Positions 1,167 to 53,274 of a stretch of DNA of 64,000 bases are shown one piece after another. The stretch comes from Isurus oxyrinchus (taxonomy: Eukaryota): the NCBI GenBank assembly GCA_026770705.1, contig JANJGN010000546.1:310001-374000 (forward strand), in the 5' to 3' direction. The stretch's first letter is position 1, and each line of letters opens with the position of its first letter. The position numbers and the translations under genes were made by a program. The notes under the pieces are model-generated. The model did no database searches and was not told the origin of the DNA. It worked only from the letters and a program-made list of their open reading frames with translations.

Positions 1167-1206
1167 ATGGTTGGGAAATCTTACTTCCTCCTGTCACTTC
1201 TCCAAG
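1167..1206 (+). CDS. Gene A leader (signal peptide) exon MVGKSYFLLSLLQ
   Basis: ACAATGG Kozak context, hydrophobic stretch, CAAG|GTAATA phase-1 donor; paralogues at 20625 and 49064; joins the V exon to give LLQ-VGLSQ. Confidence 0.8.
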
Positions 1207-2189
1207 GTAATAACATCGTCAGCTTGGACAGACTTATGGCTAATAGTCTTTGTAAAAGAACATTCTTATGGAGCTCTGATAGGGAACTGATTCAGCAGTG
1301 AGTCAGTGTACAAACTCACACCACGTCCCATTCACCCATCACCCCTGTGCTCACTGATATACACTGACTCCCTGTCTGACAGCAGAACTGCAGGACAGCA
1401 GAGACCTCAAAGGGTTTCAGGGCTGGAGGAGGTGACAGTGATAGGGATTAGAGATGGAGAATGGAGGGATAAGGAATCAATGAAGAGATTTTGAAAATTG
1501 AGGCATTGCTGGACTGGGAGCCAGTGTAGGTCAGTGAGTGACAGGGGAGCGATCGGCTGAATAGAGAAGCAGGGATAAAAACTGGGGGATGAAGTCTATC
1601 CTGATGCAAGCACTCCGATATCAATGCCCTGAAATTTTTCTCTCTTGCTGATTTTCATCAGAATTTCCCATGAAGACAACACAGAAGCTCTTAGATTAGA
1701 CAGGCAGTTCAGCGTCACACTTCCTGTCCATTCTCACCATGTTAGAAAATTCGATAAGATAGCAAGATAACTGATAGAGAGAAGGGAGGCAAAGCTGTCT
1801 GTATGTAAAACTGTCAAATATTCTGAGTTATCATGATTGTTTCTGATCTGCTGCAGAGTTTATATTTCATTGAAACTTATCACTTTGCAGCTCAGAGAGA
1901 GACCATTGACTCACTGCCTGAAAGGGCGGTGGAAGCAGATTCAACAGGAACTTTCAGAAGGGGAACTGGATAAATACTTGAAGGGGACATTTTGCAGGGC
2001 TGTGGGGGAGAGAGCAGAGGTGAGAGTGGGACTAATTGGACAGATCTTTCAAAGGCCCAGCACAGGCTCGATGGGCCAAATGGCTTCCTTCAGTTCCGGA
2101 TCATTCCACAATCCGATAAATTAAATCTCTTATCAGTAACACTTCAGGCTCCCGCTGCAGGAATGGATCTTTGAGAAGGATAGGGAACA

Positions 2190-5100
2190 AGCGGTTTCTC
2201 ATATCATGTTCATATTTATTGACAATTACATAAGTGCATGGAACTGTTGAATATTTGACTCTCTAAAGTGTGGATTTAACCTTCTGGTCCACCCAGATCT
2301 TGTGCTGGTTACCTTGTCTGGAGGTGTCTTTAACTGCTCACAGTGGTCTGTGGGATTGTCACCCTTGGATGTTGTTCCTGATTTCATGTGGGATCTTCTC
2401 CTCGATGGAATAGGAGCGGGAATGGATCTGATTTATCCTCGGTTCCGCCTCACCGCTGTGCCCTTGTGTGTTTGACTCCATAGGCCCTTGGTTCTGAACA
2501 AATCCTTGTCACCTCGGCTGGTGGTCATGAACCTTCTGTGGGATCCTGGATGTGAACTTGTCCCAACTCTAAACTTGGCAACTCTGCACCTCCATTTTTA
2601 TCATGAACATTCCTTATCTTCTCTTGTAGTTTTAAAAGCTGCCCTCTGGTTTCTGAGAGAGTAGAATGGGTAAGAGTAGCGAAATTGGTCACTACTGGCA
2701 CACCAAACATGATCTCTGTCAGTGATGGAATAAGGTGAGGTGATGGTGTAGTGGTATTGTTGCTGGATGAGTAATTCAGAGACCCAGGGTAATGTCCTGA
2801 GGATATGGGTTCAAATCCGGCCATAATAGATGATGGAATTTGAATTTAATAAAAATATGAAATTCAAAGTCTAGTGATGACCACAAAACCATTGTTGGAA
2901 ATCCCACCTGGTTCACCAGTGCCCTGTAGGGAACAAAATTGTCTGGCCGACATGTGACTCCAGACTCCACGTCAATGTGGTTGACTCTTACATTAGGGAT
3001 GGGTAATAAATCCTGGCCTCGCCAGTGACTCCCACATCCCATGAATGAATTTAACAAAGTTGCAGTTGTAGGTGTCGATCTCAGATGTAACATTGCAATG
3101 TGTGGATCTTGCTTGGCCTGTCTACATTTGAGAATTAGGGATTTCACTGTGTGAATCATTCATTCAGCTAGGCTGTTAGATCAGGGGTAATGAGGAGAAG
3201 AAGTAGTGTGATTGATATTCCAGATTATCTGTAATCATGTCCCTAGGTTCACCAAATAATCTGAAAATCGTGCTTAGAGTGTGTGCACCAGTTGTGCTCG
3301 GTGTGTTGTGCTATTTTTGAATAACGGGATATCTGGTAAAGCTGTCGACGATGACGATGAAGTCAGTGACATGGACATGAAAGGATTCAGATGTGATTTT
3401 GGACTAAGAATAGGCAGGAATTTCCTGTGGAATCAGTGGTTCTTTGTGTTGACTTGGCTCATCCTCTTGACAAGCCTCGAACTTCCCTACAACAACTTCA
3501 AGGTCATTGTTCATACCCGGCCAGGGACTGTATCTCTTGTGAGTCTCCTTGTCTGATCTGTGCCCATGTGTGAGGGATGAAGTTGTTGAAGAATATAGGA
3601 TCACAAATGTGCCGGTATGATGCCCTGCCTGCCATTAAAAAAGACTCCCTGGGAGATACCTCGCTTATCTCGATGAGGTCAAGTTGAATCAGGCCACCCT
3701 TTCAATGATATTTCCACAGTTCCTGCCGAATTTTTCACTGTTCCCTCTTGTAGCTGCTGGCATTTCTCTTGTGCTAAATGTACTGGATCAATTGACAGAC
3801 TTGCATTCTCCTGCAGGTGTAATGTTGCAGCTCCCTTGAAACTGACAATACTGTTGAAACTTTCTGCATATTTCAATGTTATGTCCATGAACTGAGTTGC
3901 TGGGGTAGTTTCTGAGTTTGACCCATGTGAGGTCTGACAGATTCCATGGATTGTCTCTAGGGTGAGGTCACCGCATGCCGGTAGACTTGCAATTGCTCAG
4001 CCTTTAGTCTCCACGATGTAGAACATCTGTGACACCCAGGAGGATTGATTGTACTTGCACCCCAGGACTATGGATTCTGCACATGGAGTTGGTGAAGTGT
4101 TGTACACAGCAGTAGGTTTTCCCATGGACTCCCATGTCCTTGGATACATGTCTTTGAAAATTTGCTGGGGTGGGCTGTGGGAGGGGAATGTTGGCACTTG
4201 CCCCTGTGTCAATCTTGGTCAATAAAGGGGAGGTTGCAACTTTCTCAGGGCAGAAAATTGGAATCTTGGCCAATAGTGCGGGTGATGTGACAGCATCTGT
4301 TCTCCGTGAGATTGATGGTGTAAAAGGTTTGAAATTGTTCAACAATTGTACAATACGTTGAGCACAAGTGCTGCACAAACTCTAGGCTGGGGTTTTCCGG
4401 CACAGTCATGATGGGCCCTGCCGTGGGAGATTGGACAAACATTGGCTTTCGGCCGGACCGGACAATCCTGGCAGTGGGTGGGGCCAGAAAATCCCACCCC
4501 TATGGGACATTTTCAGTTTATTTGATGTGCCCAGAGAGATCTTTAAAGACAACAATCCACAATTTATTGGCAAGCCACGTCAGGATATGTGTGAGAGGTG
4601 GAATATCGATCACCACTCCTCGTCTCACCGTGTACATCATCGCCATTTCCTGGTTTGTCAGTCACCACATGTATATGTTCCTGATGGGATAGTGGATGGT
4701 CATTCTTATTGCTTGAAGGTTCCCCGTTGTGTAGGGTCTGTTTGGATCAGCGCACGGCTCTTTGTAGCTGCATGAGCCTTTGCTCTAGTGCCCTGCCGCT
4801 GTCAATGGCCCTTTCTGCCACAAGCCTTGCAGGATTGGTGGAAAGCTGGGCATTTCCTTGGTGCCTGCAGAAGGCCACACCTTCCACACTTCTCACTAGG
4901 TTTGGATGTTCTAGTGAGTGTGTCAACAATTGATGTTGTACTGAGGACCTGTAATCTTCGTTGACCTGCGAGGATCACTTCGTATTTATGTCCATCCTTG
5001 AGTAGCTCTTCAATGCTATAGGCTTTGGTCGTATCTAGCAGTTCTCACCATGAGGGATCCGTCTGCTCCCCAGCTCTTTACTTGAGCTCTTTCCCATCAC

Positions 5101-7431: not shown

Positions 7432-7800
7432 TTGGACTGTCACAAGAGTGGAAAGGTGACACTCCACGAGAGGTGACGGCACAGAAAGGTTCGTGTGTAC
7501 AGATTCCATGTAATTACAATTACCCATCACATTTGTTAGAGAAAACACGTGTTGGAATCTGGAAAATGAGAAGGGACAAATGGCATACATCGTCTATAGC
7601 CTTTCACTCCAAGGATCACAGTCACGAGTTACCACGGTTCCACCATCGGACCCGGCTGTCTGGAGACCTGAAAGATGGTGACTGTTCCCTGATTATAAAC
7701 AACATCAGACGGGAAGATGCAGGACCTTATTTTTTCACGATAAAATTTGGCAATGGTCCGAGCCATAACTATTACCCTGTAACCCAGCTTCACGTTTCTG
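7432..7800 (+). CDS. Gene A Siglec-type V-set exon 1 (outer V, YFFT, essential Arg absent)
   Basis: ctctccccag acceptor, TCTG|gtaagt donor, 369 nt phase 1-1; Siglec motifs GSCVQIPC, GDCSLII, DAGPYFF; ACG (Thr) at 7737-7739. Confidence 0.92.
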
Positions 7801-8039
7801 GTAAGTGCTGTGTTATAATTACTCAACAATTCACATTCAACACTCAATGGGAAATAATAGTGTTTGATTTGCTTGTTTTTTGGCCGTGTTAACCAGCGTC
7901 ACTATTTTTAATGATTTGTCTATTTCTGCTCCCAGATCCATGAGCTTATTGTGTGTGATTGAATCCACATCATAGCTGTAACGTAAACCGAGCTGAGGGG
8001 TGATGACACCTCCCCGCTGAGTGAAGTATCTCCTCCCCA

Positions 8040-9010
8040 CTACACCTTCCACCCCTCACACTGTCCGTGTAAACCCCTGTCCCATCTCCAGCCTCTCTTT
8101 CCCCTCCAAAGTCCTTGAACGTGTTTCCATCTCCCGAATCCGTTCCCATCTTTCCCGGAACTCCATGTTTGAATCCCTCCAATCAGGTTCCCACCCCAGC
8201 CACTGTGCTGAAACAGCTCTTATCAAGGTCACAAATGGCATCCTGTGTGACTGTGACAAAGGTCAACTTTCCCTCCTCGTCCTTCTCGATCTGTCTGCAG
8301 CCTTTGACCCGCTCGACCACACCATCCTCCTCCAACACCTGTCCACTGTCGTCCAGCTGGGTGGGACTGCTCTCCCCTGGCTCCATTCTTATCCATCTCA
8401 TCGTAGCCAGAGAATCACTTGCAATGGCTTTGCAGCATCATCTGAACAGTATTAGTTTTCACCTGTCCACTGAGGATCCCCAGCTCTACCTCACCACCAC
8501 CTCTCTCGACTCCTCCACTGCTGCTAAATTATCAGGCTGCTTATCCGACATCCAGTACTGGATGGGCAGAAATTCCCTCCAATTAAATATTGGAAAGACT
8601 GAAGCCATTGTCTTCATTCCCCACTCCAAACTCTGTTCCCTCGCTACCAACTCCATTCCTCTCCCTGGCAGCTCTCTGAGATTGAAGCCAATCTGTTCAC
8701 AGCTTTGTTGTCCCATTTGATCCTGAGATGAGCTTCCGGCCTCATATCTGCGCCCTCACTAACACCGTCTATTTCCACCTCCGTAACATCGTACGACTTC
8801 ACCCTGTCTCAGCTCATCTGCTGCTGAAACCCTCATCCACGCCTTCATTACCTCCAGACTCGACTGTTCCAACACACGGTCTACACTCCATAAACTTGAG
8901 GCCATCCAAAACTGCTGACCACGTCCTTACTCACACCAAGTCCCATTCCCTTATCACCCGCTCTGCTCGATGACCGAGACTGGCTCCTGGTCAAGCAAAG
9001 TCTCAATGTC
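8040..9010 (+). mobile_element. L2-type LINE RT fragment
   Basis: ORF motifs SKVLERV, ETALIKVTN, LVLLDLSAAFD, LQLNIGKTEAI; frameshifted. Confidence 0.85.
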
Positions 9011-9029
9011 CAAATTTTCATCTTTGTTT

Positions 9030-10135
9030 CCTCACTATCTCTGTAATCTCCTCCTCCTCCTCCGCCAGCCCCTACAACCCTCCCTATCTCTGTAACTTCT
9101 TTCAGTGACCAGAAACCACCCCTATCTCAGAACCTTCCTCCAGCTCCAACAACCCTCCCTTTCTCTGCACCATTCTCCAGCCACTCCAACAAACCCTATC
9201 TCTAAACCCCCTTCCAGTCCCTACAGCAATCTCTATCTATGTATCCTCCTCCAGTCCCTACAACCCTCCCTATCTCTATAAACTCCAGTCCCTACAGCCC
9301 TCCCTATCTCTATAATCTCCTCCAGTACCTACATCCCTCCCTATTTCTATAACCTCCTCCAATCCCTACAGACCTCCCTATGTCTATAACCTCCCCCAGT
9401 CCTTACAGCCCTCCCTATCTCTATAACCTCCTCCAGTACCTACATCCCTCCCTATCTCTATAACCTCCTACAGTTCCTACAGCCCTCCCTATCTCTATAA
9501 CCTCCCCCAGTCCTTATAGCACTCTTTCTCACTGTAACCTCCTCCAATCCCTACAGCCCTCCCTATCTCGATAACCTCCTCCAGTCCCTACATCCCTCCC
9601 TATCTTGATAACCTCCTCCAGTACCTACAGCATTCTCTATCTCTGTAACTTCCTCCAGCCACAACAAACGTCCCTATCTCTGTAACCCAATCCTGTACCT
9701 ACAAACCCCCTATCTCCATAACATTTCCCATTCCCGTCCACCCTCCCTATCTCTGTAACTATCTTTTGCCCCTAAAGCCTCCCTTTCACTGTAAATTTCT
9801 CCAGTCCCTAAAAACCCTCTGTCTCTGTAACCTACTCATGCCCCTAATGCCTCCCTTATCCTTTAACGTCCAACAGTCCCTACAATCCCCTTTTCGCTCA
9901 AAGCTCCTCAAGACCCAACAACGTTCCCTAACTCTGTAACCCCATCCTGCCCCAACAACCCTTCCTTTCACTGTAAGTTCCACCAGCCCCTCCAACCTTC
10001 CCTATATCTGTAACCCCATCCTGCCCCTACAACCCTCCCTGGCTCTGTAAACTCCTACAGCCCCTCCAATCTTTCCTACCTCTGTAGCCTCACTACAGCC
10101 TCTGTACAAAGTACAGCCCCTACAACCCCCCGAGA
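9030..10135. repeat. ~37-bp C-rich minisatellite (CCTCCTCCAGYCCCTACARCCCTCCCTATCTCTGTAA)
   Basis: Direct periodicity, expanded from the L2 3' region. Confidence 0.85.
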
Positions 10136-11839: not shown

Positions 11840-12205
11840 CTGAACCCTCACAAGAGTGGAAAGGTGACACTCCACGAGAGGTGACAGCTCAGAAAGGTTC
11901 GTGTGTACAGATTCCATGTCATTACAGTTATCCATTGTGTCTGGAAAACCAACCGCGAGGTGGAGTCTGGTTTAATAATGAGGAATGGAGAACATCGTCT
12001 ATAGCCTTTCACTCCAAGGATCACAGTCATGAGTTACCACGTTTCCACCATCGGACCCGGCTGTCTGGAGACCTGAAAGATGGCGACTGTTCCCTGATTA
12101 TAAACAACATCAGATGGGGAGATGCAGGACCTTATTTTTTCAGAATAGAATTTGACAGCGGAAATAGATACAGCTACTATCCTGTAACCCAGCTTCATGT
12201 TTCTG
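11840..12205 (+). CDS. Gene A V-set exon 2 (inner V, YFFR, extra B-C loop Cys)
   Basis: 366 nt phase 1-1 with canonical splice sites; AGA (Arg) 12142-12144; TGT 11938-11940 in PCHYSYPLC. Confidence 0.92.
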
Positions 12206-12933: not shown

Positions 12934-13230
12934 ATTTCACAGATAAACCCACGATATTCCCTGCTGAAATTATTGCAGGAAAGCGTATGGATGTAAGCTG
13001 CACCTTCAACACAACGTGCAATGGAACAGCAGCACCTGTCTTAACCTGGGACACTCCCACTGACGTACCTGGATCAGTCTCAAACACTGTAACTCAGCAT
13101 GGTGTCACTCTGACCTATACTTCTGTTCTGACCCTGATCCCATCACTCAAACACCACGGACACACTCTCAGCTGCAGAGTGAGATATCCATCTGTTTCAT
13201 CGAAGCAGACCCTCGTACTAACTGTGCAAT
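12934..13230 (+). CDS. Gene A Siglec domain-2-type C2-set exon (C2a)
   Basis: 297 nt phase 1-1; DFTDKPTI...SCTFNTTCNGTAAPVLTW...HHGHTLSCRV resembles CD33-type domain 2, including the interdomain Cys. Confidence 0.92.
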
Positions 13231-13552: not shown

Positions 13553-13705
13553 GACATCTGAATATCACAATGAACAGAACAAGTTCCAACAATGAGCTGT
13601 GGTTGGTGATTCCTTACGTTACATCCGGGGACACTGGAGACTATCAGTGTGTGGCAGAGAATGAACATGGACCAGTGGATGGGCTCATAACCATCACTGT
13701 GGAAC
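13553..13705 (+). pseudogene. 5'-truncated C2b pseudo-exon (gene A)
   Basis: 3' half of C2b (MNRTSSNNELWL...ITITVE|gtgagt); the acceptor and 5' half are replaced by a ~180-bp insert. Confidence 0.8.
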
Positions 13706-14531
13706 GTGAGTGGACACAGACTTCAACATCTCTCTCAGATTGAATCATGACACAAACACACACAAATATACAGACCTAAATAGACACCTGCAGACACACA
13801 ATCCCACATGTATGAGCACACACAATGACACACTCACAAACTAACACACTCAAACACATCTCCCCCGTGGGTTACCTGACCTCCATCAGTGCTGCATCGG
13901 AGAGTTGACGTAGATTCTGGGATTTGTGTTCCCATTCATATTTCTGGAAGAACATGGAAATTGCAAATTCTATTAGACACTCAGATGCACAGAGATACTT
14001 ACAGATACTGATTGCCTCTCCAACTCTCTCTCTCCCTTGAAGAATCTTCTTCAAACCAAACCCTTTGACCAGGCATCTGTCCCAACTCCTCCTTCTGTGA
14101 ATCTGTGTGAAATATTGTTTGAGTATCTGAGAGTAAGAGAGAGGTGGAGAGGTTTAGGAAGGGAATTCCTGTTGGTGAAAAGCTTACATCATGTTCCCAC
14201 CTTTCCAGAGCCCATTTTGCACATGATGTCCAATATCCCTGTTCATCATGGGGATTGCCTATGTAAACATCACGCTGTAGTTACACTCTCCTACCAGTGG
14301 TGGCACGGTAGCACTTAACCCTTGCATCTCCCAGATTTTCAAGCAATTTCACTTCCCAATTTGCTACTACTCACCTCAACCACTCCCTGTGGGAGCGAGT
14401 TCCACATTCTCCCCTCTCTCTGGGTAAAGATTGGAACTGTTTATTAAGCGGGGGGTGTAAGTCCGTGGGGGAGTCCATCTCGATCCTGCCCGATTCGCAC
14501 ACGCGTCCGAGATGGATTTCCATCTTGCACT

Positions 14532-15387: not shown

Positions 15388-15669
15388 ACGCTCCACGGAA
15401 TCTCTCAATTACTTCTCCAGATATGATTAACGCTTCATCAATCAGTATAATTGAGTGGAATTCTGCAGTGATAATCTGCTCTGTCGAGAGCTCCCCAGCT
15501 TCTAACCTGATGTGGCGACATCTTAATGTCCCAATGAACAGAACAAGTTCCAACAATGAGCTGTGGTTGGTGATTCCTCATGTTACATCCAGGGACACTG
15601 GAGAATATCAGTGTGTGGCAGAGAATGAACATGGAGCAGTGGAGGGGTTCATAACCATCACTGTGGAAT
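15388..15669 (+). CDS. Gene A C2b Ig exon
   Basis: 282 nt phase 1-1, tttttag acceptor and GAAT|gtgagt donor; (Y)APRNLS...ICSVES.P...W...DTGEYQCVAENEHG. Confidence 0.9.
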
Positions 15670-17373: not shown

Positions 17374-17513
17374 ACAGTGGAGGAGAGATTCTGCACGTGA
17401 TCCTGATCCTGGGAATACAAGCTGTGATATTCCTTGTGGCTGTGGTTATCACTATCGCTGGAGTCTGTGTCTGGGAGAGACAAACAGTGAAAGGAAGTCG
17501 ACAGACTGTTTGA
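17374..17513 (+). CDS. Gene A terminal TM + short tail exon (YSGGEILHVILILGIQAVIFLVAVVITIAGVCVWERQTVKGSRQTV*)
   Basis: ttctctag acceptor, phase-1 frame (not the frame shown in the ORF track); long hydrophobic span; TGA 17511-17513; Gln (CAA) at 17418-17420. Confidence 0.85.
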
Positions 17514-20089: not shown

Positions 20090-20174
20090 AGGGGGCAGCA
20101 CAGGAAGAGGTCATTCAGCCCAAGCAGAGCGTGTGGGCAGTTCCTCCCCAGGCGAGCAGTCGGACAGGTACTGG
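20090..20174 (+). other. Putative non-coding first exon of gene B
   Basis: Shared 85-nt exon with TGG|GTAAGT donor, ~450 nt upstream of the leader ATG. Confidence 0.55.
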
Positions 20175-20624: not shown

Positions 20625-20664
20625 ATGATCGGGAAATCCTACTTCCTCCTGTCTCTTCTCCAAG
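20625..20664 (+). CDS. Gene B leader exon MIGKSYFLLSLLQ
   Basis: Paralogue of 1167-1206, phase-1 donor CAAG|GTAATA. Confidence 0.8.
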
Positions 20665-25056: not shown

Positions 25057-25434
25057 TTGGATTGTCACAAGAGTGGAAAGGTGACACTCCACGAGAGGTG
25101 ACAGCGCAGAAAGGTTCGTGTGTACAGATTCCATGTCATTACAGTTATCCATCAGATTTGGTAAAGAAACCACATGTCGGAATCTGGAAAATGAGAAGCT
25201 ACATACGGAACAAATGGTCTAAATGGTCTACAGCCTTTCACTCCAAGGATCACAGTCACGAGTTACCACGGTTCCGCCATCGGACCCGGCTGTCTGGAGA
25301 CCTGAAAGATGGCGACTGTTCCCTGGTTATAAACAACATCAGACGGGAAGATGCAGGACCTTATTTTTTCACGATAAAATTTGGCAATCGTCCGAGCCAT
25401 AACTATTACCCTGTAACCCAGCTTCAGGTTTCTG
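25057..25434 (+). CDS. Gene B V-set exon 1 (outer V, YFFT)
   Basis: 378 nt phase 1-1; ACG at 25371-25373; begins VGLSQEW. Confidence 0.92.
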
Positions 25435-28691: not shown

Positions 28692-29060
28692 CTGAACCCT
28701 CACAAGAGTGGAAAGGCGACACTCCACGAGAGGTGACAGCGCAGGAAGGTTCGTGTGTACAGATTCCATGTCATTACAGTTATCCATCGTGTCTGGAAAA
28801 CCAAACGCGAGGTGGAGTCTGGTTTAATAATGAGAAAGAGATTCCCTGGGCTCCCATTGCCTTTCACTCCAAGGATCACAGTCACGAGTTACCACGGTTC
28901 CACCATCGGACCCGGCTGTCTGGAGACCTGAAAGATGGCGACTGTTCCCTGATTATAAACAACATCAGACAGGAAGATGCAGGACCTTATTTTTTCAGGA
29001 TAGAATTTGACAATGGTCCGAGACATAACTATTACCCTGTAACCCAGCTTCACGTTTCTG
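28692..29060 (+). CDS. Gene B V-set exon 2 (inner V, YFFR, extra Cys)
   Basis: 369 nt phase 1-1; AGG 28997-28999; TGT 28790-28792. Confidence 0.9.
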
Positions 29061-32250: not shown

Positions 32251-32619
32251 ATAAACCCTCACAAGAGTGGAAAGGTGACAGTCCACGAGAGGTGACAGCG
32301 CAGGAAGGTTCGTGTGTACAGATTCCATGTCATTACAGTTATCCATCGTGTCTGGAAAACCAACCGCGAGGTGGAGTCTGGTTTAATAATGAGAAACAGA
32401 TTCCCTGGGCTCCCATTGCCTTTCACTCCAAGGATCACAGTCACGAGTTACCACGGTTCCACCATCGGACCCGGCTGTCTGGAGACCTGAAAGATGGCGA
32501 CTGTTCCCTGATTATAAACAACATCAGACGGGAAGATGAAGGACCTTATTTTTTCAGAATAGAATTTGACAATGGTCCGAGCCATAACTATTACCCTGTT
32601 ACCCAGCTTCACGTTTCTG
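32251..32619 (+). CDS. Gene B V-set exon 3 (inner V, YFFR, extra Cys)
   Basis: 369 nt phase 1-1; AGA 32556-32558; TGT 32349-32351. Confidence 0.9.
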
Positions 32620-33431: not shown

Positions 33432-33728
33432 ATTTCACAGATAAACCCATGATATTCCCTGCTGAAATTATTGCAGGAAAGCGTGTGGATGTAAGCTGCA
33501 CCTTCAACACAACGTGCAATGGAACAGCAGCACCTGTCTTAACCTGGGACACTCCCACTGACGTACCTGGATCAGTCTCAAACACTGTAACTCAACATGG
33601 TGTCACTCTGACCTATACTTCTGTTCTGACCCTGATCCCATCACTCAAACACCACGGACACACTCTCAGCTGCAGAGTGAGATATCCATCTGTTTCATCG
33701 GAGCGGACCCTTGTACTAACTGTACAAG
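33432..33728 (+). CDS. Gene B C2a exon
   Basis: 297 nt phase 1-1, almost identical to 12934-13230. Confidence 0.92.
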
Positions 33729-37451: not shown

Positions 37452-37579
37452 NNNNNNNNNNNNNNNNNNNNNNNNNNNNNNNNNNNNNNNNNNNNNNNNN
37501 NNNNNNNNNNNNNNNNNNNNNNNNNNNNNNNNNNNNNNNNNNNNNNNNNNNNNNNNNNNNNNNNNNNNNNNNNNNNNNN
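37452..37579. other. Assembly gap (128 N) inside a CA-rich microsatellite
   Basis: Run of N flanked by (CA)n-like sequence. Confidence 0.99.
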
Positions 37580-38091: not shown

Positions 38092-38373
38092 ATGGACCAC
38101 AGAATCTCTCAATTACTTCTCTTGATGTGATTAACGCTTCATCGGTCAATATAATTGAGGAGAATTCTGCAGTGATAATCTGCTCTGTCGAGAGCTTCCC
38201 AGCTTCTAATCTGACGTGGCGACATCTTAATGTCCCAATGAACAGAACAAGATCCAACAATGAGCTGTGGTTGGTGATTCCTCACGTTACATCCAGGGAC
38301 ACTGGAGACTATCAGTGTGTGGCAGAGAATGAACATGGAGCAGTGGAGGGGTTCATAACCATCACTGTGGAAT
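38092..38373 (+). CDS. Gene B C2b exon 1
   Basis: 282 nt phase 1-1, open, canonical AG/GT. Confidence 0.9.
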
Positions 38374-39505: not shown

Positions 39506-39787
39506 ATACACCACGGAATCTCTCAATTACTTCTCTTGATATGATTAACGCTTCATCGATCAATATAATTGAGGGGAATTCTGCAGTGATAAACTGCTCT
39601 GTCGAGAGCTTCCCAGCTTCTAACCTGATGTGGCGACATCTTAATGTCCCAATGAACAGAACAAGTTCCAACAATGAGCTGTGGTTGGTGATTCCTCACG
39701 TTACATCCAGGGACACTGGAGATTATCAGTGTGTGGCAGAGAATGAACAAGGGGCAGTGGAGGGGTTCATAACCATCACTGTGGAAC
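39506..39787 (+). CDS. Gene B C2b exon 2
   Basis: 282 nt phase 1-1, open. Confidence 0.9.
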
Positions 39788-40757: not shown

Positions 40758-41039
40758 ATGCACCACGGAATCTCTCAATTACTTCTCTTGATATGATTAA
40801 CACTTCATCGATCAATATAATTGAGGGGAATTCTGCAGTGATAATCTGCTCTGTCGAGAGCTTCCCAGCTTCTAACCTGACGTGGCGACATCTTAATGTC
40901 CCAATGAACAGAACCAGTTCCAACAATGAGCTGTGGTTGGTGATTCCTCACGTGACATCCAGGGACACTGGAGATTATCAGTGTGTGGCAGAGAATGAAC
41001 ATGGAGCAGTGGAGGGTTTCATAACCATCACTGTGGAAT
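40758..41039 (+). CDS. Gene B C2b exon 3
   Basis: 282 nt phase 1-1, open. Confidence 0.9.
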
Positions 41040-41074
41040 GTGAGTTAAAGCAAACTTCAACATCACTCACATAC

Positions 41075-41111
<37 letters not shown>

Positions 41112-42036: not shown

Positions 42037-42318
42037 ATGCACCACGGAATCTCTCATTTACTTCTCTTGATTTGATTAACGCTTCATCGATCAATATAAT
42101 TGAGGAGAATTCTGCGGTGATAATCTGCTCTGTCGAGAGCTTCCCAGCTTCTAACCTGACGTGGCGACATCTTAATGTCCCAATGAACAGAACAAGTTCC
42201 AACAATGAGCTGTGGTTGGTGATTCCTCGCGTTACATCCAGGGACACTGGAGACTATCAGTGTGTGGCAGAGAATGAACATGGAGCAGTGCAGGGGTTCA
42301 CAACCATCACTGTGGAAT
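42037..42318 (+). CDS. Gene B C2b exon 4
   Basis: 282 nt phase 1-1, open. Confidence 0.9.
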
Positions 42319-42349
42319 GTGAGTTACACAGAGTTGAACGTTCTCTTGT

Positions 42350-43576: not shown

Positions 43577-43673
43577 GGCGAGATTCCAATGAATGGAAAG
43601 CAGGATTGCTTGGAGCTGGAATCTGTTTGAGTGTTGGACTGAGTGGATTCTTCATCTTCAAGTGTGTGAGAAA
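43577..43673 (+). CDS. Gene B transmembrane exon (W)RDSNEWKAGLLGAGICLSVGLSGFFIFKCVRK
   Basis: ttttacag acceptor, AAA|gtaagt donor, phase 1-2; uncharged Gly-rich 20-aa hydrophobic span followed by basic KCVRK. Not called in the ORF track. Confidence 0.82.
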
Positions 43674-44431: not shown

Positions 44432-44516
44432 AGGGAGCAGCACAGGAAGAGGTCATTCAGCCCAAGCAGAGCGTGTGGGCAGTTCCTCCCCAGGCGAGCA
44501 GTCGGACAGGTCCTGG
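44432..44516 (+). CDS. Gene B candidate cytoplasmic exon 1 (K)GSSTGRGHSAQAERVGSSSPGEQSDRSW, a copy of the shared 85-nt exon
   Basis: acacag acceptor, TGG|gtaagt donor, phase 2-0, open; bridges the phase-2 TM exon and the phase-0 exon at 45028. A 22-nt exon at 44207-44228 would also bridge. Confidence 0.55.
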
Positions 44517-44689
44517 GTAAGTAACGGAACGATTGGAATTCACTTCCATGACCAACACCGTCCTTTGTTGATGTTGTGACTTTATAAAGACAGATACCAA
44601 TGATTGATGCCTTTGAAAGATTTCTACTGATTATTGAGATCTGGGTGTGAGGCTCAGGTCAGTTGTACGGAACATCTTTCTGGTTAAAT

Positions 44690-44958: not shown

Positions 44959-45027
44959 ATAATCAAACCCAACATCGAATACACATCATGTTGATTGTCA
45001 CTCTGTCCATTTCCATCTCTATTACAG

Positions 45028-45132
45028 AAGAGAGGCGAGGGGAAAGCAGGAATCAAATCGAACCACCGTGTTGATGAATATCGAGGTCCTGTTTATGAAA
45101 ACTGTGAGCGTGGTTGGGCTTTGAGGAATCAG
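45028..45132 (+). CDS. Gene B cytoplasmic exon 2 KRGEGKAGIKSNHRVDEYRGPVYENCERGWALRNQ
   Basis: ctctattacag acceptor, CAG|gtgagt donor, 105 nt phase 0-0; tyrosine motif PVYENC. Confidence 0.72.
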
Positions 45133-45261
45133 GTGAGTCACACACCACAGGATCCCCAGCCTCTCAGCTGCTCCAGTAGCCTGGTTATTGATATGGCTGC
45201 TCCAGTCCTGTATCTGCAATGTTTTATACAGTCACTCCCAAACCCAACCAAACTCACACCC

Positions 45262-45642
45262 AACACCGTTCAGAATCAATAATCAAACCCCGTTCAGTAT
45301 CAATAATCAAACCCCGTTCAGTATCAATAATCAATCCCCATTCAGTTTCAATAATCAAACCCCGTTCAGAATCAATAATCAATCCCCATTCAGTTTCAAT
45401 AATCAAACGCCGTTCAGAATCAATAATCAATCCCCATTCAGTTTCAATAATCAAACGCCGTTCAGAATCAATAATCAAACCCCGTTCAGAATCAATAATC
45501 AAACCCCGTTCAGATTCAATAATCAAACTCCGTTCAGTATCAATAATCAAACCCCGTTCATTATCAATAATCAAACTCCGTTCATTATCAATAATCAAAC
45601 ACCGTTCAGTATCAATAATCAAACCCCCTTCAGTATCAATAA
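45262..45642. repeat. 24-bp minisatellite (AATCAAACCCCGTTCAGTATCAAT), ~16 copies
   Basis: Direct periodicity; 8-aa repeat ORFs in three frames. Confidence 0.95.
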
Positions 45643-45741
45643 TTAATGTATCTATTGTGGGTGGAATTTTCGATTTGGTTCAATAATTCTAAACACTGAT
45701 CACTCTGATTGTCACTCTGATCATTTCTGTTTCTATTACAG

Positions 45742-45858
45742 CAGAAAGATGAGAAGGATCTGGAAATGAAATCTAACCGCGGAGTCAATCCTGATACAGA
45801 TGATGATCTTTACGCAAACTGTGATTTTGCCAAGGATTCTGTTTATGGGAATTTATAA
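45742..45858 (+). CDS. Gene B terminal cytoplasmic exon QKDEKDLEMKSNRGVNPDTDDDLYANCDFAKDSVYGNL* (C-terminal ITIM)
   Basis: ttctattacag acceptor (NAGNAG), phase 0, TAA 45856-45858; SVYGNL fits (S/I/V/L)xYxx(L/V/I). Confidence 0.8.
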   Translation, partial: QKDEKDLEMKSNRGVNPDTDDDLYANCDFAKDSVYGNL

Positions 45859-46619
45859 ACTGAGCAAGAATGAGACACACACAGTGTGGGGAGAATACAG
45901 AACGGGAGAATCATTCAAAACTCCAATTTACCTTCCTAATATCCACAGGAACTCACTCCCAGGAAATAGATTTAAACCTCTTGTTACAATCTGATGGAAT
46001 TTCTTCGGAATGATCTATCCAGGATGATTGTCTGTGGGTTTCAATTCGAACATCCTCCTTCAGATTTGTCCCTCACTGTTGGAAACATACTTCTCTCCAA
46101 TCTGATTGTAAATGTCTTTAGATATCGTTCGATGATGTACCAGGACAGAACGGACAAATTCAATCCCGTGTCCATGATTATGAGTTAATTTTCATTCTGT
46201 TATTCACCTTCCTGTCTGTCAGTGTTTACAGAATATTCATCAGCCAGTGTAGACTTCAGGAAATGCAGGATCGGTGGATAATTGGAGCAGAGGAGATTGT
46301 TAAAATTTACTCACCATTTTGTAGTCAAAAGTATTTTCAGATATATATTTGGATTTTACACTTCATCGTTAAAGAGCAATCCCGGAAACAGGGAAACAAT
46401 TTGATTGGAGATTTGAGAAATTCTCTGCAGCTCAGAGGATAACAGATGTGCTACAGTGCCACCACTGGTGGCAGGACATCATTTCAGCGTGACATGTTTA
46501 CATTGATGTTGCCAATGAACATTGGAAATTATGATGTGAAAAATTGGTTGCAGGTTTACCTTCTTCAATATGTCATGGATGGATGAGACAGCTTTGATAA
46601 CAGAATGAGACAGAGCTGC

Positions 46620-46625
46620 AATAAA
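46620..46625 (+). terminator. Candidate polyadenylation signal, gene B
   Basis: First AATAAA noticed downstream of the stop (~760 nt). Confidence 0.4.
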
Positions 46626-46964
46626 CCACCATGTTAGTCTTTCACACTTGGAGAGTACAATTAGCATCCATCCTGAAGGCTGAGTGGATGGGTGGACTAT
46701 GCGATGTGTTACAGATCACAGAGACCAACATCCTTGATCCTGGTTCTGCTCTGTGTTTGATGATATACTTGGATAAAAGATTGGGAAAATAAATAATCCT
46801 CCTGCATTAACCTGTAACTGGTCTCTCCTTCTGTCAATGTCGTGAGGAGACAATTGGGTTTGAGGTCCAAAATCAGACATTCTTTGACTGCCCATTGAAT
46901 AGGAACAGGAGGAGGCCATTCAGCCCCCTCGAGCCTGCTACACGGGAACAAGAGGGCACCTGAT

Positions 46965-47179: not shown

Positions 47180-48375
47180 GACAGGAGGACATTCAGCCTC
47201 TTGATCCTGTTACACAGGAACAGCAGGAGGCCATTCAGCCCCCTCGAGCCTGTTACACAGGAACAGGAGGAGGCACATTCAGCCCCCTCGAGCCTGTTAC
47301 ACAGGAACAGGAGGAGGCCCATTCAGCCCCCTCGAGCCTGTTACACAGGAACAGGAGGAGGCCCATTCAGCCCCCTCGAGCTTGTTACACAGGAACAGGT
47401 GGAGGTCCAATCAGCCCCCTCGAGCTTGTTACACAGGAACAGGAGGAGGCCCATTCAGCCCCCTCGAGCTTGTTACACAGGAACAGGAGGAGGCCCATTC
47501 AGCCCCCTCGAGCTTGTTACACAGCAAGAGGAGGAGGTCCATTCAGCTACTCAAGCCTATTACACAGGAACAGGATTAGGACAATACAGCCCCTCGAGCC
47601 TGTTACACAGGAACAGGAGGAGGCCTATTCAGCCACTCAAGCCTGTTACATGAGGACAGGAGAAAGCCCATCAGCCTCTTGAGCCTATTATACAGGAACA
47701 GGAAAAGGACATTCAGTCCCTCAACACCCTTCCACAGGAACAGGAGAGACTCTCAGCCTCTCGAGCCTGTTACCCAGGAACAGGAAGAGCACATTCAGTC
47801 TCTCAACCCACTTACACAGGAATAGGAAACCCATTCAGTCACTCGTGACTGTTACACAGGAACAGGAGGAGGCCCATTCAGGCCCCTCGAGCCTGTTACA
47901 CAGGAACAGGAGGAGGTCCATTCTGTCCCCTTGAGCCTGTTACACAGGTACAGGAGACCCATTCAGCCTCCACAAGCTTGTTACACAGGAACATTAGGGG
48001 CTCCATTCAGCCCCATCAAGCCTGTTACACAGGAACAGGAGGAGGCCATTCAGCCCCTCGAGCCTGTTACACAGGAACAGGAGGAGGCCCATTCAGCCAC
48101 TCAAGCCTGTTACACAGGAACAGGTGGAGGCCCATTCAGACCCTCTAACCTGTAACACAGGAACACAAGGAGATCCATTCAGCCCCTCGAGCCTGTTACA
48201 CAGGAACAGGAGGAGGCCTATTCGGACACTCGAGCCTGTTACACAAGGACAGGGGGAGGGCATTCAGCACCTGGAGCCTGTTACACAGGAACAGGAGGAG
48301 GTCCATTCAGCTACTCACACCTGTTACACAGGAACAGGAAGAGGCCCAGTCAACCCCTCGAGCTTGTTGCATGTG
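47180..48375. repeat. 44-bp minisatellite (ACACAGGAACAGGAGGAGGCCCATTCAGCCCCCTCGAGCCTGTT)
   Basis: Direct periodicity; the unit resembles the CR1 tail at ~11008-11045. Confidence 0.92.
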
Positions 48376-48528
48376 AACAGTCGATGGCCCTTCAACCACA
48401 TTCTTGGCACGCAAAGGGCTAACAGTTTTCTAACAGTGCGAGGCAAAGAGCTGCTTTCACACTTGGTACCAAGCACTTCCAATTTTGTCTCACAGAGACA
48501 CATCCACCCTTTCTAATTAAACACAAAT

Positions 48529-48613
48529 AGGGAGCAGCACAGGAAGAGGTCATTCAGCCCAAGCAGAGCGTGTGGGCAGTTCCTCCCCAGGCGAGCAGTC
48601 GGACAGGTCCTGG
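48529..48613 (+). other. Putative non-coding first exon of gene C
   Basis: Shared 85-nt exon with intact GTAAGT donor. Confidence 0.5.
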
Positions 48614-49041
48614 GTAAGTAACGGAACGACTGGAATTCACTTCCACCACCAACACCGTCCTTTGTTGATGTTGTGACTTTATAAAGACAGATTCCAATGA
48701 TTGATGCCTTTGAAAGATTTCTACTGATTATTGAGATCTGGGTGTGAGGCTCAAGTCTGTTGTACAGAACATCTTTCTAGCTCAAGGGATGAGGGAACTG
48801 CAGAGACATGAGCTTTGGGGTGTCCTGAGGTGGTGAAAGGTGCTATAGAAATGCAAATCCTTCATTATTTGTCTTACTTAAAGACTTGTAACTCTCTGCA
48901 GAACACCTATCATCCCACAGAGAATGAAATTAGTCTGTGAAGGCATTGTCTAAAAGCAGTTCTGATCTCTCGAGAGCTGTCGGACAAGAGGTGAGGTCTC
49001 ATTAACTCCTTTCTCTTTCACAGCTTGAGAGTGAGAAGTGG

Positions 49042-49102
49042 ATGGAATATCTGGGAGTAGACGATGGTCGGGAAATCTACTTCCTCCTGTCACTTCTCCA
49101 AG
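49042..49102 (+). pseudogene. Gene C leader exon with 1-nt deletion (frame restorable only from upstream ATG 49042)
   Basis: GGGAAATCTACTTC versus GGGAAATCTTACTTC (A) and GGGAAATCCTACTTC (B); ATG 49064 gives MVGKSTSS, ATG 49042 gives MEYLGVDDGREIYFLLSLLQ. Confidence 0.7.
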
Positions 49103-49792: not shown

Positions 49793-49824
49793 CTATTACC
49801 CTGTAACCCGGCTTCATGTTTCTG
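49793..49824 (+). pseudogene. Gene C V-exon remnant (deletion junction)
   Basis: Pre-acceptor sequence TAAATATTGACATTTCT is fused directly to the last ~30 nt of a V exon (ATTACCCTGTAACCCGGCTTCATGTTTCTG|gtaagt). Confidence 0.88.
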
Positions 49825-50683: not shown

Positions 50684-50980
50684 ATTTCACAGATAAACCC
50701 ACGATATTCCCTGCTGAAATTATTGCAGGAAAGCGTATGGATGTAAGCTGCACCTTCAACACAAAGTGCAATGGAACAGCAGCACCTGTCTTAACCTGGG
50801 ACACTCCCACTGACGTCCCTGGATCAGTCTCAAACACTGTAACTCAGCATGGTGTCACTCTGACCTATACTTCTGTTCTGACCCTGATCCCATCACTCAA
50901 ACACCACGGACACACTCTCAGCTGCAGAGTGAGATATCCATCTGTTTCATCGGAGCGGACCCTCGTACTAACTGTGCAAG
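50684..50980 (+). CDS. Gene C C2a exon (open)
   Basis: 297 nt phase 1-1, near-identical to A and B; the host gene is probably defective. Confidence 0.75.
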
Positions 50981-51303: not shown

Positions 51304-51456
51304 GACATCTTAATGTCCCAATGAACAGAACAACTTCCAACAATGAGCTGTGGTTGGTGATTCCTCACATTACATCCAGGGACACTGGAGACTATCAGTG
51401 TGTGGCAGAGAATGAACATGGAGCAGTGGAGGGATTCATAACCATCACTGTGGAAC
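51304..51456 (+). pseudogene. 5'-truncated C2b pseudo-exon (gene C)
   Basis: Same truncation and upstream insert as 13553-13705. Confidence 0.8.
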
Positions 51457-53134
51457 GTGAGTGTACACAGACTTCAACATCTCTCTCAGATTCGAACACG
51501 ACACAAACAACCTCAAACATACACATCTAAGTAGACACATGCAGACACACATATATGACCACACAGAAAGACACACTCACACACAAACACACTAACACAC
51601 ACTCCCCTGTGGGCTACCTGACCTCCCTCAGTACTGCCCTGGAGAGTTGGCCTGAATTCTGGGATTTGTGTTCCCATTCATATTTATGCAAGAATATGGA
51701 AATTACAAAGTCTATTACAGACAGTCAGATGCATAGAGACACTCACAGATACTCTCTGCCTCTCCAACTCTCTCTCTCCCTTTAAGAAGCTTCCTGAAAG
51801 CTCACCCTTCGAACAATCACCGGTCCCAAATCCTCCTTATCTGATTTGTGTGATTTTCTTTGTGTATTTGAGAGTAAGAGAGAGGTGGAGAGGTTTAGGA
51901 GGAGAATTCCTGTTGGTGAAAAGCTTACATCATGTTCTCACCTTTCCAGTGCCCATATTTCACATGATGTCCAATGTCCTTGTTCATAATGGGAATTGCC
52001 TATGTAAACATCACGCTGTAGTTACAGTCTCCTACCAGTGGTGGCATTGTAGCACTTAATCCTTGTGTTTCCCAGCTTTTCAAGCAACTCCACTTCCCAG
52101 TTTGCTCCACAAGCTGTGAGTTCATTGGAATTCAATTATTTCTCAAACGGTAGATTTGATGTCATTTTATTGAAAACTTCCTCAGTGCCTCCCTGAAGGG
52201 TTTACACTCTCTGGGAAGCAGGAATAGGCTGGATGTTGGGGAGTTCATCTTTTCCCAGAGAGTAGGGATCCTCGGGAATGTGCTGTCAGTGGGTGTGGTG
52301 GTTGCTGATTCTCTGTCGCCTTCAAGAGGGATCTGGAGTCGTTACTGACTGGGGGAGAGATCATGGAAACGGAGAATGATACAGCACAGGAGGAGGCCAT
52401 TCAGCCCATTGAGACTGTGCCAGGTCTTTCAATGTGCTATCCAATCAGATCCACTAACCACCACTCCACTTTGCCCCCATCTTCCTCCTTTAAGTATTTA
52501 TCCAATTTCCCTTTTGAAAGTTCCTATTGAATCTGCTTCCACCGCCCTTTCAGGCAGCACCTTCCAGATCACAACAACTCGCTCTGTCAAAACAAATTCT
52601 CCTCATCTCCCCCTCCGGTTCGTCAATCTGTGTCCCTCTGGTTACCGAGCCTCCTGCCCCTTAAGTACATTGATACTGTTCACCTCAACCACTCCCTGTG
52701 GGAGCGAGTTCCACATTCTCCCCTCTCTCTGGGTAAAGATTGGAACTGTTTATTAAGCGGGGGGTGTAAGTCCTTGGGGGAGTCCATCTCGATCCTGCCC
52801 GATTCGCACACGCGTTCGAGATGGATTTCCACCCTGCACAAAACGTTTCCAGAATTTTCTACAGCACAATCCTGTACACAGCGATTGGGAGAAACATTGG
52901 ACAGGGAGTCCAACAGCACAATGATCCATTCTCACCAATGTTCCACGCTAAGGGGAAAGTTCCGATTGTCCACTCTTAGAGTGTTTACAATGAAAACATT
53001 CATTCCACATTGAATCCCAGTGGATGGGTCAATATTACAGCAAATGTTGCAGTGATATGAAGCTTGATTGTTCAGCCAGAGTAAGAGATTGAAAGCGGAG
53101 AGTCAGTGATGATTTCTTTCTGTGTGTTCTCTAG

Positions 53135-53274
53135 ACAGTGGAGGAGAGATTCTGCACGTGATCCTGATCCTGGGAATACGAGCTGTGATATTCCTTGTGG
53201 CTGTGGTTATCACTATCGCTGGAGTCTGTGTCTGGGAGAGACAAACAGTGAAAGGAAGTCGACAGACTGTTTGA
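53135..53274 (+). CDS. Gene C terminal TM + short tail exon with intramembrane Arg (ILILGIRAVIFLVAVV)
   Basis: Matches 17374-17513 except CGA (Arg) at 53179-53181. Confidence 0.75.

Follow-up and report, generated by a model that had tools for sequence, protein, structure and literature searches.

In humans, Siglec-5/Siglec-14 and Siglec-11/Siglec-16 are adjacent paired genes, one partner having an uncharged transmembrane (TM) segment and a tail with Tyr motifs, the other a basic residue in the TM and a tail that is short (PMC13358205, PMC4042635). The binding domains of these pairs are described as nearly identical, and in many cases the activating one of the two is null or a pseudogene (PMC13358205, PMC4042635). 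PILR-alpha and PILR-beta form a sialic-acid-dependent V-set pair in which one receptor has an ITIM and the other couples to DAP12 (PMC13358205).

The window analysed here, a 64,000-nucleotide stretch of DNA from Isurus oxyrinchus, holds three tandem Siglec-type receptor units, A, B and C, arranged head-to-tail on the + strand (Table 1). Like the human Siglec pairs, they are adjacent genes of one cluster with two tail types and a conversion-like homogenisation of part of the ectodomain, and the frequent loss of the human activating partner has a parallel in A (Gln in the TM) and C (truncated). They differ from the human pairs in that the V domains of the partners are just 87-89% identical, in that each gene has two or three tandem V exons, and in the inhibitory tail, which carries one C-terminal ITIM and YxN tyrosines where the human pairs have an ITIM and an ITIM-like motif. 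Also unlike the human pairs, the activating TM residue is missing from the only structurally complete partner, A. The PILR pair is far less similar to the window than the Siglecs are; PILR has a single V and no C2-set domains, and was found among the weak PDB matches in the V exon search (E about 1e-4).

The explanation that we favour, and that we consider probable when taken as a whole, is that the three units arose by segmental duplication in a multigene cluster of Siglec (CD33-related-like) genes belonging to a lamniform-type shark; that gene B is an expressed inhibitory-type receptor; that C is a decayed copy with neither signal peptide nor V exon and with half an Ig exon; and that inhibitory/activating pairing is real for the shark Siglec family, its activating arm within the window being impaired or at least unproven.

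Table 1. Features of the three receptor units in the window (positions counted from its first letter).
Feature	Position	Strand	Remarks
85-nt exon copy	632-716		donor GT>TT
A leader exon (MVGKSYFLLSLLQ, phase 1 donor)	1167..1206	+	ATG at 1167; matches N-termini of shark RefSeq Siglec models
A V-set exon 1 (distal, V1-type)	7432..7800	+	Thr for canonical Arg, YFFTIKF
A V-set exon 2	11840..12205	+	Arg kept, YFFRIEF
A C2-set exon (domain 2, C-x5-C pattern)	12934..13230	+	within 97-100% identity island vs B and C copies
A relic, 3' half of Ig exon	13555..13737	+	donor kept; homologous acceptor absent
A Ig (I-set/C2) exon	15388..15669	+	
A terminal exon, TM with Gln, 12-aa tail, stop	17374..17513	+	CAA at 17418-17420; conserved shark Arg-TM cassette, Arg lost
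85-nt exon copy upstream of B leader	20090..20174	+	AG and GT intact
B leader exon (MIGKSYFLLSLLQ)	20625..20664	+	
B V-set exon 1 (V1-type)	25057..25434	+	Thr for Arg
B V-set exon 2	28692..29060	+	Arg kept
B V-set exon 3	32251..32619	+	Arg kept; query in PDB, family and fold tests
B C2-set exon	33432..33728	+	
Assembly gap (N)	37452..37579	.	inside CA-rich microsatellite, B intron between C2 end 33728 and first Ig start 38092; touches no exon
B Ig exon 3	38092..38373	+	
B Ig exon 4 (ends ...GGAAC)	39506..39787	+	Ig exon ending in C joined to 40758 and 43577 in RNA contigs
B Ig exon 5	40758..41039	+	RNA joint 41039->42037
B Ig exon 6	42037..42318	+	exon map and RNA contigs
B TM exon, uncharged (AGLLGAGICLSVGLSGFFIF)	43577..43673	+	starts phase 1, ends phase 2
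B 85-nt cytoplasmic exon (GSSTGRGHSAQAERVGSSSPGEQSDRSW)	44432..44516	+	RNA joints 43673->44432, 44516->45028; orthologous exon in Carcharodon, Cetorhinus and Chiloscyllium models
B cytoplasmic exon (KRGEGKAGIKSNHRVDEYRGPVYENCERGWALRNQ)	45028..45132	+	RNA contigs, frame
B last coding exon (...DLYANCDFAKDSVYGNL, stop)	45742..45858	+	ends SVYGNL, stop
85-nt exon copy	48529-48613		acceptor lost
C leader exon, 1-nt deletion (MVGKSTSSCHFSK)	49064..49102	+	frameshift; signal peptide lost
C V exon relic, 30 nt (last codons and donor)	49795..49824	+	acceptor deleted with V exon
C C2-set exon, intact	50684..50980	+	
C relic, 3' half of Ig exon	51306..51488	+	full Ig exon absent from C
C terminal exon, TM with Arg (CGA), 12-aa tail, stop	53135..53274	+	

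The original prediction described three near-identical tandem genes. Three units are indeed present and the exons that it named are real, including the leader ATG, the TM and tail exons of B and the terminal exons of A and C, all at the positions given; however, the units are not equivalent, instead of three intact V exons there are five, of which A has two and B three, and the 85-nt exon of B had been missed. The Ig exons are all phase 1-1 with good AG/GT sites, far above chance expectation. None of the three units unites a working leader with both a V domain and a basic residue in the TM.

Membership of the Siglec family and an origin in cartilaginous fish were both supported. When B V-set exon 3 was searched against the PDB, the best 18 sequence matches were all Siglec V-sets, headed by Siglec-5 (3.9e-15) with the Arg and three Cys aligned, and Pfam assigned V-set and Ig_CD22. 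Its AlphaFold model (pLDDT 88) gave Siglec V-sets as the top 47 Foldseek matches (TM 0.79-0.87). The top protein matches were shark and ray RefSeq models, the closest among these being Carcharodon carcharias with up to 97.5% identity per exon; none was identical to the window, which indicates a differing species or a paralogue.

In gene B the leader is followed by three V-set exons, a single C2 exon and at least four Ig exons; after these come the uncharged TM and a tail of about 100 aa encoded by three exons. RNA contigs from four runs under two organism labels joined an Ig exon to 43577 and 45132 to 45742, in addition to the joints listed in Table 1, with the frame verified, so that the predicted splicing of the Ig exons to the 43577, 45028 and 45742 exons was observed. 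These exons and the terminal SVYGNL are real, but they are out of frame without the 85-nt exon at 44432-44516, which is needed because the TM exon ends in phase 2. Contig coverage of the 3'UTR extends at least to 46683, and AATAAA occurs at 46620 and at 46788. Those reaching the TM exon have C at the last Ig-exon base, as in Ig exon 4. They are 96-99% identical to the window, and since the genome holds many similar clusters, some may come from paralogues or sister species. Continuity of B over the N gap was assumed from orthologous domain order, and further copies of a repeat of about 1.3 kb containing an Ig exon, or a mis-join, could be hidden there. The ITIM was called by consensus alone; the tail has three further Tyr, of which two sit in a YxN context. 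Shark and ray models of at least eight genera carry [SV][VI]Y[GA]N[VIL] at the C-terminus; among the orthologues, one of Carcharodon (PVYVNV) and one of Chiloscyllium (AVYGNI) deviate at position −2. Isoforms P0181 and P0182 of Cetorhinus maximus 'Siglec-13' chain TM, 85-nt, cyt1 and cyt2 exons as gene B does and end in SVYGNV. In the B protein, a signal peptide would be followed by as many as three V-set domains (the distal one without and two with Arg), then by a C2 domain, Ig domains in variable number and the uncharged TM. Ligand binding would be expected to lead to tyrosine phosphorylation and recruitment of an SHP-type phosphatase, and the YxN tyrosines may add Grb2-type signalling.

Leader, V and C2 exons had been described as almost identical between units, and the architecture likened to that of the human pairs, whose ectodomains are homogenised by gene conversion. 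This was borne out for the A and B leaders and for the C2 exons, which are 96-97% identical in protein and form an island of 97-100% identity against flanks of 57-92%, but not for the V exons of A and B, where the figure given above also refers to protein. Judged from these alignments, homogenisation looks confined to the C2 exon.

The two signalling modules are unrelated, as predicted, and each is conserved in other sharks. Also as predicted, the terminal exons of A and C specify a 12-aa tail lacking Tyr and a TM with Gln in A and Arg in C, reading ...ILHVILILGI[Q/R]AVIFLVAVVITIAGVCVW followed by ERQTVKGSRQTV and a stop. Unit A has, by its exon content, the apparent architecture of an activating partner (V1-V2-C2-Ig and an Arg-TM-type short-tail exon) in which the Arg codon reads Gln in the assembly; the change would have arisen by one transition at a CpG. 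In the form sequenced, A is not expected to dock an acidic ITAM adaptor. We regard it as unlikely that A (and perhaps C) is nevertheless a working activating receptor paired with B, the Gln being a sequencing error, one Arg/Gln allele or a residue tolerated by the adaptor. The leader, V, C2, Ig and TM exons of A are intact with good splice sites, over the 141 nt compared at the terminal exon A departs from C in nothing but CAA versus CGA, and the identity of 98-100% to Arg-bearing C around the TM exon (95-100% over 16540-18640) implies that the change is very recent. The Arg is present in all eight orthologous RefSeq models (Carcharodon and two Scyliorhinus species), and in both genera Arg-TM and ITIM/ITSM proteins occur with near-identical V domains. 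However, the assembly reads CAA, the A TM has no basic residue elsewhere, with just a His near its outer end, C is incapable of giving a secreted or V-bearing protein, and the V domains of A and B share no more than 87-89% identity.

Unit C had been thought to share leader and V exons with A and B, which its frameshifted leader, deleted V exon and half Ig exon contradict. Its C2 and TM exons are nevertheless intact and match those of A and B at 97-100% identity, apparently kept so by conversion-like exchange with A and B, as the identity pattern suggests. Given that C follows the B stop codon on the same strand at a distance of 3.2 kb, these exons might instead serve as an alternative 3' cassette, with read-through from B splicing the B ectodomain exons to the C2 exon of C, its Arg-TM exon or both, to give inhibitory and activating isoforms from one locus. 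Such splicing between neighbours is modelled in Cetorhinus, where RefSeq isoform P0180 joins the 85-nt exon of one gene into the upstream copy and leader exon of the next. We consider this very unlikely, however, as the RNA contigs run into the B 3'UTR to at least 46683, with the two AATAAA signals noted above, no joint from a B exon to C was seen in the contigs over the B stretch, which end before C, and conversion alone could preserve the C exons.

Human Siglec-12 has two V-set domains and has lost the essential Arg in humans. The window shares with it the tandem N-terminal V-sets and the loss of the canonical Arg in one of them, a likeness that accounts for the RefSeq name 'Siglec-12' of several shark models; here the loss is confined to the distal V and there are as many as three V exons, and orthology is not implied. 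The A V-set exon 1 groups with lamniform 'V1 of 2' domains in a 95* clade. The Carcharodon V1-type domain keeps the Arg (YFFRIKF). It is very unlikely that the receptors are Siglec-fold proteins that are no longer sialic-acid lectins, to which the paired-Siglec logic of sialoglycan self-recognition and pathogen mimicry would be inapplicable: the Thr at the sialic-acid-binding Arg position in the outermost V of A and B (about 6 of 100 family V domains lack the Arg), the 76-80% identity of V1-type exons to Carcharodon against 93-97% for V2-type, and a dN/dS of 0.68 for A_V1 versus B_V1 are outweighed by A_V2, B_V2 and B_V3, in which the Siglec fold and Cys pattern are preserved and the predicted F strand still carries the Arg, and by a dN/dS of about 0.3 between the V2-type exons of A and B.

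Automatic annotation had been expected to overlook the pairing, but RefSeq models of related sharks already carry both exon types, and RefSeq already predicts Arg-TM Siglec-like proteins in sharks and ITIM forms in sharks and rays. Carcharodon carcharias 'Siglec-12' (P0177, P0179) and 'CD33-like' (P0185) have the V-C2-Arg-TM order and 12-aa-type tail of A and C, and their TM carries Arg at the position of the Gln of A. In the literature, we found no paper describing Arg-TM/ITIM Siglec-like shark proteins. The proposed paired inhibitory/activating Siglec system accordingly holds at the level of the family in sharks and not as an intact pair in this stretch. The 'on/off pair' design of primates is present in sharks, though not intact in the window.

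The exon inventory comes from searches, made exon by exon, in which translated exons and full-length sequences of shark relatives were the queries; frames across junctions were checked by script. Three head-to-tail duplicated units, designated A, B and C in 5′ to 3′ order, were found on the plus strand, with an overall identity of about 90% in a self-comparison of the window. Every Ig exon is of phase 1-1 and has consensus AG/GT sites. In these searches, which covered the whole window, no exon was recovered from the minus strand and none of Ig type past 53.3 kb. An assembly duplicate as the source of the units was ruled out because they are about 90% identical and structurally different. The original prediction of three genes with almost identical leader, V and C2 exons stands in part: it does not extend to C, in which the leader is frameshifted and the V exon deleted, and five V exons are present (two in A and three in B) instead of the three implied.

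Exons, relics, exon copies, repeats and other features of the window
Feature	Position	Strand	Remark
Gene A leader	1167-1206	+	
Gene A V exons (A_V1, A_V2)	7432-7800, 11840-12205	+	
Gene A C2 exon	12934-13230	+	
Gene A relic	13555-13737	+	3′ half of Ig exon only
Gene A Ig exon	15388-15669	+	
Gene A terminal TM/tail exon	17374-17513	+	
Gene B leader	20625-20664	+	
Gene B V exons (B_V1, B_V2, B_V3)	25057-25434, 28692-29060, 32251-32619	+	
Gene B C2 exon	33432-33728	+	
Gene B Ig exons	38092-38373, 39506-39787, 40758-41039, 42037-42318	+	
Gene B TM exon	43577-43673	+	
Gene B cytoplasmic exons (85-nt exon, cyt1, cyt2)	44432-44516, 45028-45132, 45742-45858	+	
Unit C leader	49064-49102	+	
Unit C V relic	49795-49824	+	
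Unit C C2 exon	50684-50980	+	
Unit C half-Ig relic	51306-51488	+	
Unit C terminal exon	53135-53274	+	
Copies of the 85-nt exon	632-716, 20090-20174, 48529-48613		about 450 bp upstream of each leader
Homology blocks (~300 bp) around the 85-nt copies	574-881, 20019-20339, 48475-48778		
N run	37452-37579		inside an impure CA microsatellite extending on both sides
V-exon insert	8021-10086, 25655-27742, 29281-31290		3′ of A_V1, B_V1 and B_V2
33-bp minisatellite family	142-346, 14914-15255, 18955-19327, 19541-19808, 54691-55075, 61790-62118		consensus near CAGTGCAGCACTCCCTCAGTACTGACCCTCC
24-bp array	45262-45643		16 copies, last intron of gene B
44-bp array	47183-48368		28 copies, between B and C
LINE-type element	56521-58238	-	reverse-transcriptase-like ORFs, downstream of the cluster

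The N run lies 3.7 kb 3′ of the B C2 exon and 513 bp 5′ of the first B Ig exon and thus touches no exon or reading frame. Since the ~1.3-kb Ig-exon repeat array starts directly after it, further Ig units could hide in the gap. B is read as one gene across the gap because its exons share a strand, are compatible in phase and follow the domain order of Cetorhinus models. Several mobile or repetitive sequences accompany the units. An insert was duplicated together with three of the five V exons; it consists of a reverse-transcriptase-like ORF fragment and, after it, a 37-bp repeat whose 25-29 copies span about 1 kb. The 33-bp minisatellite occurs six times, including at both window ends and 3′ of the terminal exons of A and C.

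Membership of these domains in the Siglec family is well supported by PDB and Pfam matches, by fold and by the patterns of Cys and Arg residues. The V exon B_V3 matched Pfam V-set and Ig_CD22, and in a phmmer search of the PDB its best 18 matches were all Siglecs (3.9e-15 to 1.2e-8), in the order Siglec-5 (3.9e-15), Siglec-8, CD33, Siglec-7, Siglec-10, MAG, sialoadhesin and Siglec-15, with the first non-Siglec match at 6e-8. When an AlphaFold model of this exon (39 aligned sequences, pLDDT 88) was compared with the PDB by Foldseek, the top 47 matches were Siglec V-sets (TM 0.79-0.87). The Siglec-like nature originally proposed for the domains was therefore borne out by both sequence and fold. 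Siglecs bind the carboxylate of sialic acid through a conserved Arg in strand F. Its predicted counterpart is the Arg of YFFRIEF, a motif present in A_V2, B_V2 and B_V3 that lines up with YFFRVE in Siglec-5 and Siglec-8; this Arg is located in predicted strand 98-106. Siglecs also share an unusual Cys pattern: the V-set domain has C-x4-C in strand B and a further Cys in strand E, and an extra Cys in domain 2 (C-x5-C) forms the interdomain disulfide. All five V exons contain SCVQIPC and GDCSL without variation, and their three V-set Cys align with those of Siglec-5. The C2 exon contains a C-x5-C pattern (VSCTFNTTC) and matched domain 2 of MAG, CD33, Siglec-8, -10 and -5 in the PDB, with nectin domain 2 alongside. 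Bit scores for the V exon were 59 for Siglec-5, 58 for Siglec-8, 55.5 for CD33, 53 for MAG, 49 for sialoadhesin, 38 for Siglec-15 and 25 for CD22; because CD33-type Siglecs and MAG score so closely, these values do not separate the CD33-related subgroup. Siglec subgroups are also mixed in the fold-match ranks of the V model.

A full HMMER scan found 1245 relatives. The best are shark and ray RefSeq models named Siglec-8, -10, -12, -13, -14 or CD33-like, and the relatives' RefSeq models have two to six tandem V domains. The closest are from Carcharodon carcharias (at most 97.5% identity, for one exon), followed by Cetorhinus. No identical protein was found among the database relatives, which points to a lamniform-type shark whose own proteins are absent from the database, or to unmodelled paralogues. 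More remote relatives annotated as Siglec-like come from osteoglossiform teleosts, turtles, a frog and mammals.

Gene B appears to be expressed and is predicted to be an inhibitory-type receptor, with an uncharged TM and a putative ITIM, and its tail exons are spliced to the ectodomain. Logan contigs from four runs with two organism labels, which we guess to be RNA, were placed on 40701-46700; in one of the four runs the depth on exons far exceeds that on introns. Junctions were observed from 41039 to 42037, from an Ig exon (last base C, as in Ig exon 4) to 43577 in three runs, from 43673 to 44432 in two runs (a third has a contig beginning at 44432), from 44516 to 45028, and, on a contig of 1131 nt reaching 46683, from 45132 to 45742. 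The exons starting at 43577, 45028 and 45742 are hence joined to Ig exons, as had been anticipated. The contigs match the window at 96-99% identity; some could derive from paralogues. The TM exon is 97 nt long and ends in phase 2, such that the tail is in frame only with the 85-nt exon. The original prediction was correct in its coordinates and in the uncharged TM, but it missed this exon, and the three exons it named are out of frame by themselves. With the 85-nt exon included, the tail reads CVRK-GSSTGRGHSAQAERVGSSSPGEQSDRSW-KRGEGKAGIKSNHRVDEYRGPVYENCERGWALRNQ-QKDEKDLEMKSNRGVNPDTDDDLYANCDFAKDSVYGNL followed by a stop codon. A broken B tail, with a TM exon ending in phase 0, a surplus G in the 85-nt exon and the donor of cyt1 placed at 45103, was ruled out by the junctions and a recount, with cyt1 ending at 45132.

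The C-terminal SVYGNL of B fits [S/I/V/L]xYxx[I/V/L], and comparison supports the ITIM call since the motif recurs across elasmobranch models. Two Cetorhinus models (P0181 and P0182) have exactly the exon chain of B and end in SVYGNV, and a C-terminal [SV][VI]Y[GA]N[VIL] is present in models from Mustelus, Chiloscyllium, Pristiophorus, Heptranchias, Mobula and Rhinoraja; two B-tail orthologues differ from the ITIM at position −2. Tails of CD33-related Siglecs have a membrane-proximal ITIM and a distal ITIM-like motif or ITSM. The C-terminal motif is the only ITIM in the B tail, where LYANC aligns with the LLYANI ITIM of relatives and is degenerate. Relatives elsewhere have LLYANI...TEYAQI tails; tblastn of the whole window with tail peptides detected none of these classical tail exons, and each of the B exons TM, cyt1 and cyt2 was found only once.

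One run (X15) contains a junction from 43673 to 45028 that skips the 85-nt exon. The resulting frame shift gives a short tail, REARGKQESNRTTVLMNIEVLFMKTVSVVGL and a stop, without tyrosine, and this isoform is possibly non-signalling or NMD-targeted. Contigs of the same run that lead into the 45028 exon read ...GGTACTG where the window has ...GGTCCTG (loose end 45027), and contigs extending past 45132 have AAGAAAGATGA in place of CAGAAAGATGA. A transcribed allele or near-identical paralogue with the same tail architecture is their probable source. In all four runs, contig depth is very high around Ig exon 6 (41500-43300, comprising the upstream intron and the Ig6-TM intron), where non-canonical joints and loose ends are also numerous, as is typical for interspersed repeats that are abundant and transcribed, rather than for the Siglec gene.

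A and C end differently from B. Their terminal exon encodes ...ILHVILILGI[Q/R]AVIFLVAVVITIAGVCVW and then ERQTVKGSRQTV before the stop, a tail of 12 residues lacking Tyr; the tail, the Gln in A and the Arg in C were as predicted. Arg is found in all eight RefSeq models that end in this exon (P0177, P0179 and P0185 from Carcharodon, P0184 and P0195 from Scyliorhinus canicula, and P0006, P0071 and P0158 from S. torazame). By sequence, this exon is a cassette conserved among sharks. Between A and C, identity is 95-100% over 16540-18640, which covers the exon and the 3′UTR to the AATAAA signals, compared to 73-90% in the flanks. Their sole difference in 141 nt at the terminal exon is CAA in A (position 17419) versus CGA in C. 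The change to Gln in A is a CpG transition and hence very recent, and could be fixed, allelic or an error. A is a complete gene but has Gln in its TM, whereas C has the Arg but no signal peptide, V exon or whole Ig exon. A 1-nt deletion in the C leader removes the signal peptide, the V exon and its acceptor are deleted except for 30 nt, and no complete Ig exon was found in this unit. As sequenced, none of the three units has a signal peptide, a V domain and a basic TM residue together. The complete activating partner that had been envisaged, which relatives do have, is therefore absent from the window as sequenced, as are genes for the ITAM adaptors (DAP12, FcR-gamma and CD3-zeta) with which a basic TM residue would associate. 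The putative activating arm of the locus appears impaired.

Homogenization of the ectodomains by gene conversion had also been proposed and is seen for the C2 exon and not for the V exons. The C2 exon and about 130 bp of its upstream intron are 97-100% identical across A, B and C, with neighbouring sequence at 57-92%, and this island looks like a conversion tract. Protein identity between A and B is 96% for C2, 88-93% for the Ig exons, 87% for V1 and 87-89% for the V2-type domains, so the ligand-binding domains of the two partners are not near-identical as expected. A_V2 and B_V3 share 91% DNA identity and the intron directly upstream 95-98%; with the intron more alike than the exons, the V region is a mosaic and not homogenized. 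In a quick tree with SH-aLRT support, A_V1 and B_V1 formed a distinct lineage with the first of two V domains of lamniform proteins (95%). Both have Thr at the position of the essential Arg (YFFTIKF), which is missing in only about 6 of 100 V domains of the family. The V1-type domains are 76-80% identical to their Carcharodon counterparts and the V2-type domains 93-97%.

The same tree placed B_V2 and B_V3 in a tight group (branch lengths 0.03-0.09) that includes both Carcharodon proteins with the Arg-containing TM and lamniform ITIM/ITSM proteins. In S. torazame, the first V domains of one Arg-TM model and one ITSM model are identical. Ends of both activating and inhibitory type on nearly the same V domain are therefore a property of the shark family. 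The paired system originally proposed is thus partly supported, by the inhibitory-type B and by the pairing within the family, but its activating partner appears impaired at this locus.

The copies of the 85-nt exon upstream of the leaders raise a different reading. The copy before B has intact AG and GT sites, that before A has GT changed to TT, and that before C has lost its acceptor; a pyrimidine tract and AG precede every leader exon. In a Cetorhinus RefSeq isoform (P0180), an 85-nt-type exon is followed by a second copy and then by the leader exon of the next gene in a different frame. Together with the copies seen here, it suggests that adjacent Siglec genes are linked by read-through or conjoined splicing. 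The cluster would then swap tails, with the intact C2 and Arg-TM exons of the otherwise dead C serving as alternative 3′ cassettes for B and the 85-nt copies as splice bridges between genes, which we consider very improbable. If true, read-through splicing, and not a pair of genes, would supply one ectodomain with either type of end, inhibitory or activating.

Pairing between members of a shark gene family extends beyond the setting in which it is known, as paired activating and inhibitory Siglecs have been described as mammalian, mainly primate. Fish genomes were said to be without CD33-related Siglecs in a 2020 study of fish Siglecs (PMC7226832), and the whale shark genome paper merely lists Siglecs among the Ig families of jawed vertebrates (PMC8455134). 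Our literature search found no paper on shark CD33-like or paired Siglecs and nothing usable on shark ITAM adaptors. The shark Siglec genes described here are new to the literature yet already automatically annotated, and the finding is not unique: RefSeq models of sharks predict these proteins, contrary to the concern that automatic annotation could overlook the pairing. The window and many shark and ray RefSeq models reveal that cartilaginous fish have a large Siglec family in which multi-V ectodomains are combined with any of three interchangeable ends for signalling; this moves the paired design (or the repeated invention of it) some 450 million years back. Loss of the activating arm is visible at this locus too, through a single CpG change that cost one copy its arginine and through deletion of half of another copy, which echoes the frequent pseudogenization of activating Siglecs in primates.
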